From assembly GCA_964252035.1 (NCBI GenBank), contig OZ176209.1: 64,000 bases of DNA; one strand, written 5' to 3'. The stretch is from Podarcis erhardii. Lineage: Eukaryota. The notes below the pieces were generated by a model. It searched no databases. It saw only the letters and a list, made by a program, of their open reading frames with translations, and was not told where the DNA came from. The position numbers and the translations under genes are program-made. Positions 13,764 to 49,313 of the stretch are shown piece by piece. Every line of letters begins with the position of its first letter. The first letter of the stretch is position 1.

Positions 13764-13847
13764 ACCGGCAGGAGCTGATGTTGGAACATTTTCTGGACTC
13801 AAGGCTCTTCTCAGCTGGGCATCCAAATCCTCCAGAGGTTGCTGGGA
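13764..13847 (-). CDS. WNK1: WNK1 exon 21 (SQQPLEDLDAQLRRALSPENVPTSAPAG)
   Basis: cctgcag|TCC and GGT|GTAAGT; 84 nt. Confidence 0.96.
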
Positions 13848-25880: not shown

Positions 25881-25984
25881 CTATCTATTGAGGAAACCAA
25901 TGGGGTTGATTGCGAAGGCTGCTGCTGCTGCTGCACTTGTGGTTGAGTCTCTGCAGGTGCTGTCTGAGTAACTCCAGAAGTACT
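25881..25984 (-). CDS. WNK1: WNK1 exon 13 (STSGVTQTAPAETQPQVQQQQQPSQSTPLVSSID)
   Basis: ttttgcag|AGT and AG|GTAAAT; 104 nt, phase 0-2. Confidence 0.93.
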
Positions 25985-26454
25985 CTGCAAAAGATAAAGC
26001 ATTCCCTTCATGCATCTTGTTAAAGAGCTCTTTTTCCAGCCCCATCACAGTCCATCCATCTAGGTAACTAGAAGCTGAAAAGCACACTGTTCTCTCTAGA
26101 ACATCTTAAAGCATCTAAACATTTCAAATTTTTAACCCCAATTGAGGTTTTCGTGCAAATTTGAAACAAGTTGCCTGGTGAAAGTCAACCATTTTATTTA
26201 CTACATGATGGTGGCACTACAGCTTGCCATGCAACCAGAAATCTTACTAGCAGAATGTGCAACAGAGAAGCCAATGCAGAGTGCAAAGTCCATTCAAATC
26301 TCCCCCAGCTACAGCAAGGCTGCAGGGAACACGTTTGAGGAGAGATTTTTTTCCAGTGACTGTTGAGTACAGCATGTCTTCAATACAATGATTGGCATTA
26401 CTAGCCAGAAGAGAAGTGCTAGCAAGTGTTTTGCATCTTGGGAGGCCCACTCAC

Positions 26455-26508
26455 TTCCCAACAGCATAGCCAGGGGCAACAAGGTCTCCACATTGGCATC
26501 ACATTCTG
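26455..26508 (-). CDS. Candidate unrecognised cassette exon in intron 12 (54 nt, phase 0-0): QNVMPMWRPCCPWLCCWE
   Basis: Branch GCTAAT at -26, AG-free pyrimidine tract tttctcttacag, donor GAA|GTGAGT; in frame with no stop. Prediction only. Confidence 0.55.
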
Positions 26509-26645
26509 CTGTAAGAGAAATTCATTTTGACGATTAGCATATGATTTTTCAGCTTGCTACCCCAAATGGAAGTGAATTCAAAATTCATGCCCTGAAACTC
26601 AGTTTTTAGAATGCACACACACAGCAACATGCATAGTCCATTTAC

Positions 26646-26921
26646 CTCTAATGCTGTCTGCTGGGAAGCTGAAGATGAGACCTGCTGTGCTAAACAGGAA
26701 GCAGGCTGTGGCACTTGAACCTGTCCGCCTAGACTGCCCAAAGAAACTAAAACATTCTGCTCCACATAAGGCTGTACCATTGCGGCAAGATAGCCTGGCT
26801 GAGCCAGTACATCTGTGGGTAAGGGAGGGGATAGTACTGCAGAAGGGAGGCAAGCAGAGGCCACAGAAGAAGCAATGTTTGAGTCTCCAGTATATTGTGC
26901 TGGTAGCCGAGGTGGGAAGCC
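26646..26921 (-). CDS. WNK1: WNK1 alternative exon 12 (GFPPRLPAQYTGDSN...QQTALE)
   Basis: atcgcag|GGC and GAG|GTAAAT; 276 nt, phase 0-0. Confidence 0.95.
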
Positions 26922-28214: not shown

Positions 28215-28688
28215 CTGGTACACAGCATCTGTAGGTGGAAGTGGTACTTCAGCAGTTTGTCCAAGTGTGGCTGGCAATCCCATGGGCTGAACAGATGGCT
28301 GTAGAAGCTGTGGGAGAACCTGGCCGGACAGCTGCGCCACGGGCTGCAGAAGAGTTGGAAGCTGGCTAGGGACAACAGTTGAACCCACAGGAATAGCAGC
28401 TGCTGCAGCAGATGTGGCCAAAGTGAGCAATGGCTGGCTAACACCAGATGCCATGGAGATGGGTAGAGTTGGGAAACCAGGCTGAGCCACTGACACATGA
28501 GGTGTTGCTATGGGCATCTGAGAAACTGAGAACTGTGGGTGAAGGGGAGTCTGTAAGGGCGGGCCCATGGGGAGAAAATGAGAGCCAATGGACATGACAG
28601 GGGCAACTGAAGGCTGAGGAAGGGAAGGCACTGCCATAGGTAACTGTGTTTCACCTTGGATGATCGGCACTGGCTGGGAAACAGGAAG
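28215..28688 (-). CDS. WNK1: WNK1 alternative exon 11 (LPVSQPVPIIQGE...PTDAVYQ)
   Basis: ccccag|CTT and CAG|GTATTG; 474 nt; ORF 28152..28742. Confidence 0.96.
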
Positions 28689-28950: not shown

Positions 28951-29031
28951 GACACCCAGCCAGATGGGTGGGGTAGTAGTAATAATAATAATAATAATAG
29001 GAGTAGTAGTAGTAATATATTATTATTATTA
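28951..29031 (+). repeat. L2/Squam3-type 3' terminus with (AAT/AGT)n microsatellite tail
   Basis: acccagccagatgggtgggg followed by trinucleotide repeats. Confidence 0.55.
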
Positions 29032-29691: not shown

Positions 29692-29835
29692 CTGTGTCCC
29701 AGCTGCTACCTGAGGCACAGACATTATTTGTGCTTGCTGTGTAACTGGCTGCGATGAAGCAGCTCCACTGGAAACTGAAGGCTGCTGAAGTTGGTATTGC
29801 CCAGTCTGTTGTGAAGAGGCTGAAGGCTGGGTGCT
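29692..29835 (-). CDS. WNK1: WNK1 exon 10 (STQPSASSQQTGQYQL...PQVAAGTQ)
   Basis: ttttcttctatgacag|AGC and CAG|GTAAAC; 144 nt; aligns with human QQTVQY...PQVSAGKQ. Confidence 0.9.
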
Positions 29836-30422: not shown

Positions 30423-30703
30423 TACTTAAAGGTCGGGGGCGGGGAGGTGACACTATACAAGCATGGGCATGGTGGGAAGGGAATCAACAACTGGCACTCA
30501 GACAAAGGTGAAGTTGAGCCTTTCATTGGAACTTGGCTTAAAAAAACAGGAAGCTCAAACCAGAAAACTGTGATTTAAGGCCTTGTGGAAACCCAAACCA
30601 AACATGTCTTATAATCTAAGTTCATAGGGAGATCTTGAAACACCATTTCCCAGTTCAAATAACACAGTAAACAGTGTGTTCTGAAGCCAGACATAGGAAG
30701 AAT

Positions 30704-30708
30704 TAATA

Positions 30709-30797
<89 letters not shown>
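30704..30797. repeat. Compound (GAT)n(AAT)n microsatellite (tail of adjacent L2)
   Basis: Read directly; explains the poly-I/M/L/S ORFs in the track. Confidence 0.95.
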
Positions 30798-30798
<1 letters not shown>

Positions 30799-31010
30799 TA
30801 CCCTGCCCATCTAACTGGCTTGCCCCAGCTCTCTGGACTCTTGGTGGCTTCCAACAGAATATACAGAAACACAATGGAACACCACACAATAAAAGTTTCC
30901 TGATACAGGGCTGCCTTCAGGTGTCTACGGAAGGTCGTATATTTATTTATCCGTTTGATATCTGACGGGAGGAAGTTCCACAGGATGGGTGCCACAAGCA
31001 AGAAGACCTC
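30798..31010 (-). mobile_element. L2 LINE 3' fragment
   Basis: Minus translation VAPILWNFLPSDIK...FRRHLK is typical of the L2 ORF2 C-terminus, followed by an L2-type terminus (cagttagatgggcagggtac) and microsatellite tail. Confidence 0.7.
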
Positions 31011-49226: not shown

Positions 49227-49313
49227 CTCTTTACCACAGTCTGTGTGAGAACAACAACAGTGTGAATTTATGATGACAAACACTGGGCAAAAATCTCTCT
49301 TGGAAAGATCCAT
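49227..49313 (-). CDS. WNK1: WNK1 exon 4a coding part: kidney-specific (KS-WNK1) first exon, MDLSKRDFCPVFVIINSHCCCSHTDCGKE
   Basis: ATG at 49313-49311; GAG|GTAAGA phase-0 donor joins exon 5 in frame; lies in intron 4. Matches human MDIKKKDFCSVFVIINSHCCCCPQKDCINE (recalled). Confidence 0.95.

Follow-up and report, generated by a model that had tools for sequence, protein, structure and literature searches.

The window, which is the whole 64-kb stretch of lizard DNA analysed here, carries WNK1 on its minus strand and covers the gene from the kinase domain through the C-terminal exons. WNK1 is a cell-volume sensor that controls ion transport partly via condensates. Exon 10 (..MSVPQVAAGTQ) ends at 29692 and exon 11 (..PLPPTDAVYQ) at 28215, and the interval between exons 12 and 13 contains a 54-nt stretch which was originally predicted to be a cassette exon. 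The features of this interval, in the direction of the gene, are the following:

26646..26921, minus strand: WNK1 exon 12; 276 nt, phase 0-0, ending in ..CAGCAGACAGCATTAGAG before gtaaat
26509..26645, minus strand: upstream intron; 137 nt, with branch-point candidate, pyrimidine tract and CAGCAG acceptor
26633..26628, minus strand: upstream TGCATG; within the 137-nt intron, not conserved
26538..26533, minus strand: branch-point candidate GCTAAT; branch A at -26 from the exon start, no AG between
ending at 26509, minus strand: acceptor of the candidate exon; aatttctcttacag/CAG, a CAGCAG tandem with a modest pyrimidine tract
26455..26508, minus strand: candidate cassette exon; 54 nt, phase 0-0, stop-free, peptide QNVMPMWRPCCPWLCCWE
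26449..26454, minus strand: 5' splice site of the candidate exon; GAA/GTGAGT, strong, invariant in all aligned sequences
26200..26448, minus strand: conserved downstream intronic region; 55-78% identity to birds (remaining intron ~34%)
26228..26233, minus strand: downstream UGCAUG, an Rbfox-type site; 222 nt past the donor of the candidate exon, invariant
25881..25984, minus strand: WNK1 exon 13; 104 nt, covered by raw reads of RNA runs X23 and X24

Splice signals and lizard RNA

Re-reading of the sequence bore out the description on which the prediction was built. The 54-nt stretch is open and in phase 0-0, its translation QNVMPMWRPCCPWLCCWE holds four Cys and three Trp among 18 residues, and the branch point at -26 with no AG after it, the CAGCAG acceptor and the GTGAGT donor are each present. 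Such a combination is uncommon within the window. The whole minus strand was scanned for acceptors with at least 8 of 10 pyrimidines, YAG and no AG in the preceding 20 nt, paired with a GTRAGT donor at an acceptor-donor spacing of 27-200 nt. Eleven pairs were found, two of which enclosed a sequence both divisible by three and stop-free, namely the 54-nt candidate and 13847..13764, which is a bona fide WNK1 exon. The introns ahead of exon 11 contain simple-sequence runs (28960-29030 and 30700-30900), which show up as homopolymeric translations in the ORF lists.

Lizard RNA was inspected in four runs, X1 and X7 as contigs and X23 and X24 as raw reads (~1.9 billion letters each). Exon 12, the translation of which aligns with bird and caecilian WNK1 proteins, is alternatively spliced. 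An 808-nt contig of run X7 (depth 49) joins exons 11, 12 and 13 directly, with 26646 spliced to 25984, and a separate 519-nt contig of the same run (depth 4.9) represents unspliced intron spanning the element. The X1 contigs contained unspliced sequence only. Raw reads joining exon 10 (29692) to exon 13 (25984) were found in both X23 (n = 8) and X24 (n = 18), and no raw read of these two runs fell on exon 12 or on the 54-nt element.

Known alternative WNK1 exons comprise 8b, HSN2, 9, 11, 12, 26, 26a and 26b (Vidal-Petiot et al. 2012, PMC3365125). In that study, exons 11 and 12 are skipped tissue-specifically, with a delta11-12 form in human and mouse, and no exon between 12 and 13 is reported. 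The same double skip occurs in the lizard, as 26/26 junction reads at the start of exon 13 in X23 and X24 come from 29692, thus lacking both exons 11 and 12. Because these RNA joins match delta11-12, the labels exon 12 and exon 13 fit the mammalian scheme, and the predicted placement of the 54-nt stretch between them agrees with the numbering fixed by RNA.

Compared with the window, the reads carry a 3-nt deletion at 25918 in the CAG run of exon 13 and substitutions at 25938, 25943 and 25964, and intron RNA contigs diverge from it by ~1.7%. These differences indicate that the RNA comes not from the assembled individual but from a near relative or from a population that has diverged.

Inclusion of the exon was predicted to yield junctions 26646>26508 (or 26505) and 26455>25984. 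None of the four lizard runs, where contigs drop rare variants, contained a junction into 26508 or 26505 or out of 26455, and this part of the prediction found no counterpart in the lizard RNA. The absence is weak evidence, since the runs are only four and tissue-unlabelled and two of them (X23 and X24) skip exon 12. It shows that the exon is not constitutive in the lizard, and it is compatible with the exon being used at times.

Conservation and coding pattern of the 54-nt element

A search with the exon 12 translation returned six ORF-type proteins encoded on genomic contigs of other species (L001-L006). Further bird loci were the NCBI WNK1 loci of Camarhynchus parvulus (L007) and Passer montanus (L010), a bird contig from a profile search (L008) and a bird contig from a degenerate-pattern scan of metagenome contigs (L009). 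Species were grouped by pairwise identity over ~1.1 kb. At 81% identity to the window, L001 is a second squamate, and L002, L003 and L005-L008, which match the passerine L007 at 81-97% and the window at 63-66%, are birds.

The splice signals of the element (pyrimidine tract, AG and GTGAGT) are retained in two squamates and eight bird loci (L002, L003, L005-L010). The element itself is 89% identical between the window and six birds and 94% identical between the window and the second squamate, and the flanking exons are less alike when the window is compared with the same six birds (exon 12, 0.78; exon 13, 0.51). Sliding-window identity and alignment gave an identity to birds of 0.33-0.37 for the first 97 nt of the upstream intron, 60% for its final 40 nt, where TAAT, tract and AG are kept and identity to the second squamate is 90%, and 0.55-0.78 for the ~250 nt that follow the element. 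Conservation in the region therefore peaks at the 54-nt element.

Retention of the splice sites and of the Cys pattern had been anticipated at least within squamates, and the element is in fact kept by the second squamate and by birds. The Cys pattern is preserved in three of its residues, which are invariant; Cys15 is Phe in birds, and position 12 is either Pro or His.

One bird (L003, also L004) has lost a single base of the tandem acceptor (ttacaCAG, L003:1165-1180), which leaves the distal AG alone and would remove the leading Gln from the exon. The NAGNAG choice thus seems dispensable.

Introns are rich in splice-site look-alikes, and an open intronic AG...GT pair with no function could well go unused in four lizard runs. 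Such a chance pair would not be expected to form the most conserved block in squamates and birds with both splice sites retained, nor to be used in bird gene models. Squamate-bird conservation leads us to reject a chance pseudo-exon, the probability of which we regard as negligible.

Eight positions of the exon vary across the eight aligned sequences, and the substitutions follow a coding pattern when read in the exon frame. At least five events are synonymous (Val GTG/GTC, Cys TGC/TGT and Leu CTA/CTC/CTG/TTG) versus four non-synonymous ones (M/V, R/G, P/H and C/F), although synonymous sites make up 8.3 of the 54 (binomial p = 0.006, or 0.011 if M/V arose twice). The exon frame is free of stops in every species and its length is a multiple of three, whereas frame 2 is interrupted by a stop in squamates and frame 3 shows no synonymous change at any variable codon. 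No variation occurs at residues N, V, M, P, W, P, C, C, W, L, C, W and E (nor at Q in the full listing). Some fourfold-degenerate sites are invariant as well, and synonymous sites are more conserved than coding alone requires, which implies that the constraint acts partly at the RNA level. High synonymous-site conservation is common in regulated alternative exons.

The element could alternatively be a conserved structured RNA or a small-RNA gene within the intron (snoRNA, miRNA or regulatory hairpin). A hairpin in which the pyrimidine tract and CAGCAG pair with CUGUUGGGAAG is indeed predicted in all species. The element nevertheless matched no Rfam family at E <=1, compensatory changes were present in 0/26 predicted pairs, some substitutions disrupt pairs, and the folding energy resembled that of shuffled sequences (z -0.17 to -1.8). 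Lacking an Rfam match, covariation and extra stability relative to shuffles, a small or structured RNA was rejected and is considered very improbable.

The predicted hairpin spans 26440-26525 on the minus strand in squamates and birds and pairs the acceptor region with the 3' end of the exon beside the donor. It could nonetheless contribute to skipping of the exon.

Bird gene models and candidate splicing signals

Use of the exon in birds is documented by gene models, nine NCBI model isoforms which surfaced among members of 90% clusters. All nine read ..SSQQAVVE/QNVMPMWGPCCHWLFCWE/GTQGVSQ.., which places the exon exactly at the exon 12/13 junction. Eight of them are among the 13 models of Passer montanus (X1, X2, X5, X7, X8, X11, X14 and X15), and the ninth is isoform X5 of Melospiza melodia (XP_063009959.1). 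Isoform X4 of P. montanus equals X1 minus the 18 residues. At the P. montanus locus these residues map to L010:71389-71442, in the interval between exons 12 and 13, with cttacag directly before and gtgagt directly after them. Alternative model isoforms in the NCBI pipeline require transcript support.

The exon was linked in the original prediction to full-length, kinase-active WNK1. This restriction does not hold in P. montanus, as isoform X15 opens with exon 4a (MDFTKREICPIFVIVNSHCCCSH..) and is a KS-WNK1 model carrying the cassette exon.

Approximately 230 WNK1 proteins from birds and other animals were inspected, and the exon was present in two species only. This two-passerine annotation fits low or tissue-restricted inclusion. 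The peptide was absent from the 120 best passerine matches to the exon 12-13 region. A search with the large exon against a library of 1.84 billion representatives retrieved full-length WNK1 matches (from bird, caecilian, platypus, ray, lungfish, coelacanth, bichir and gar), none of which contained it. When a profile of the element translation was compared with 5.8 billion proteins (candidates of 23-73 aa), the one match was an unspliced bird genomic ORF, and the degenerate-pattern scan of metagenome contigs added only one more bird (L009). The open-access literature yielded no description of an exon 12-13 cassette, of a link between WNK1 and Rbfox or of the peptide strings. The exon, which had been put forward as new, is apparently undescribed in the literature in this sense and is already part of automated RefSeq annotation in two passerines.

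Optional C-terminal exons of P. montanus WNK1 (CAKFNCASER.. and KMVKKVCPCNQLC; columns 2476-2519) likewise form short Cys-containing inserts. Small Cys-bearing cassettes may be a recurrent theme in bird WNK1.

A TGCATG upstream of the exon (26633..26628) was originally singled out. It is present in the 137-nt intron but occurs in this lizard only, and it was rejected as a regulatory site on the basis of the alignment. Conserved instead is a UGCAUG ~220 nt downstream, which is found in 8/8 aligned sauropsid sequences at +180 to +224, inside the invariant block TGCATGGC, and at +221 in P. montanus. The eight aligned sequences and P. montanus all place a (U)GCAUG within ~300 nt downstream of the exon, and Rbfox-enhanced inclusion is classically marked by a UGCAUG conserved downstream of the exon. 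The exon resembles Rbfox-activated cassette exons in its invariant downstream UGCAUG, its conserved intron block and its short length. It differs from them in that the UGCAUG is known here by its sequence and could instead serve exon 12. Given the conserved downstream motif, inclusion would be expected in neurons, heart or skeletal muscle.

Positions 26200-26300 of the minus strand form a second conserved block, with 71% identity to birds and 86% to the other squamate, and contain TTCTGCATTGGCTT..TTGCACATTCTG..TAGTAAGA..TGCATGGC..CTGTAGTG. The block probably acts as a splicing enhancer made up of several parts, serving either the cassette exon or exon 12.

A function in the splicing of neighbouring exons could be attributed to the 54-nt element as well. 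It would then be a conserved non-coding intronic element, i.e., a decoy or pseudo-exon which recruits U1/U2 in order to steer exon 11/12 splicing, and its occasional inclusion in the models of two passerines would be a by-product with no role in the protein. This accords with the lack of inclusion in four lizard runs, with annotation in two of the many passerine species inspected and with the position of the element 137 nt after exon 12, a known alternative exon (PMC3365125). A nucleotide identity of 89%, above that of the neighbouring coding exons, and the invariance of several fourfold sites also suit such an element, but high conservation of synonymous sites is usual in regulated alternative exons. 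Against a decoy, the synonymous excess appears only in the reading frame that exons 12 and 13 impose, the 54 nt divide by three and contain no stop in any species, and the exon is included in 8/13 P. montanus models including X1. We regard a decoy as unlikely.

We consider the 54-nt stretch to be a genuine conserved alternative cassette exon of WNK1 between exons 12 and 13, with a probability of about three in four. The cassette is probably mostly skipped, tissue-restricted and coding.

The inserted peptide and its possible role

The insert sits in a Pro/Gln-rich disordered region of WNK1, where it forms a compact hydrophobic patch. Three Trp and three Cys of the patch do not vary, two of these Cys forming a CC pair, and it contains two or three Pro. 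These prolines make a regular helix unlikely. The cassette exon shares with the known alternative WNK1 exons that it is in-frame, lies in the non-catalytic disordered part of the protein and is located beside exons 11/12. Unlike them, it is much shorter (18 aa), Trp/Cys-rich and hydrophobic as opposed to Pro/Gln/Ser-rich, and has been seen so far in sauropsids only.

No peptide other than the Cys-rich hydrophobic (CRH) motif of exon 4a is known to drive kidney "WNK bodies". These bodies are lost when either the Cys or the hydrophobic block of the motif is mutated (Boyd-Shiwarski et al. 2018, PMC6014176). The lizard exon 4a (..FCPVFVIINSHCCCSHTDC..) is located near 49300 in the window. Both peptides belong to the same gene, are short, are encoded by an optional exon and cluster Cys with bulky hydrophobic residues. 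Their arrangement differs, as the 4a motif is N-terminal and has six Cys around five aliphatic/aromatic residues, whereas the 54-nt exon is internal and encodes three invariant Cys, three Trp and 2-3 Pro. The cassette peptide has fewer Cys, accompanied by invariant W, W, L, W, V and M, and its likeness to the 4a motif is one of composition and not of demonstrated homology.

An adjacent CC pair amid hydrophobic residues is also shared with the dual-cysteine S-acylation motifs of GAP43 and PSD-95, which are found in otherwise soluble proteins. The latter lie at the N-terminus and usually have basic residues on either side, in contrast to the internal and Trp-rich WNK1 insert.

The mechanism we propose for the cassette exon, which combines a modest pyrimidine tract and a tandem CAGCAG acceptor with a strong GTGAGT donor, is that it would be skipped by default and that Rbfox-type factors acting at the downstream UGCAUG and the surrounding conserved intron would bring about inclusion in particular cell types. 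Inclusion would insert 18 residues in frame within the Pro/Gln-rich disordered region. By analogy with the 4a motif, this putative Trp/Cys sticker might increase self-association or condensate partitioning, membrane binding, or both, and S-acylation of the CC pair could possibly aid the sticker effect. Use in the lizard, the tissue pattern, the dependence on Rbfox and the function of the peptide are what we infer in this proposal.

More tentatively, WNK1 of sauropsids, and perhaps of all tetrapods, might possess a second splice-switchable hydrophobic module rich in Cys and Trp, functionally analogous to the 4a CRH. As such a module could be inserted in L-WNK1 as well as in KS-WNK1, cells expressing Rbfox would tune WNK condensates or membrane tethering by splicing and not by promoter choice. 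We hold this wider proposal to be possible, though doubtful.

An exon confined to sauropsids would represent a lineage-specific isoform and be of narrower interest. A mammalian counterpart, if there is one, would make it an undescribed exon in a disease gene (FHHt, HSAN2). A second optional, conserved and splice-controlled Cys/Trp module in WNK1 would, if true, offer a new handle on how the localisation and phase behaviour of WNK1 are tuned between tissues.
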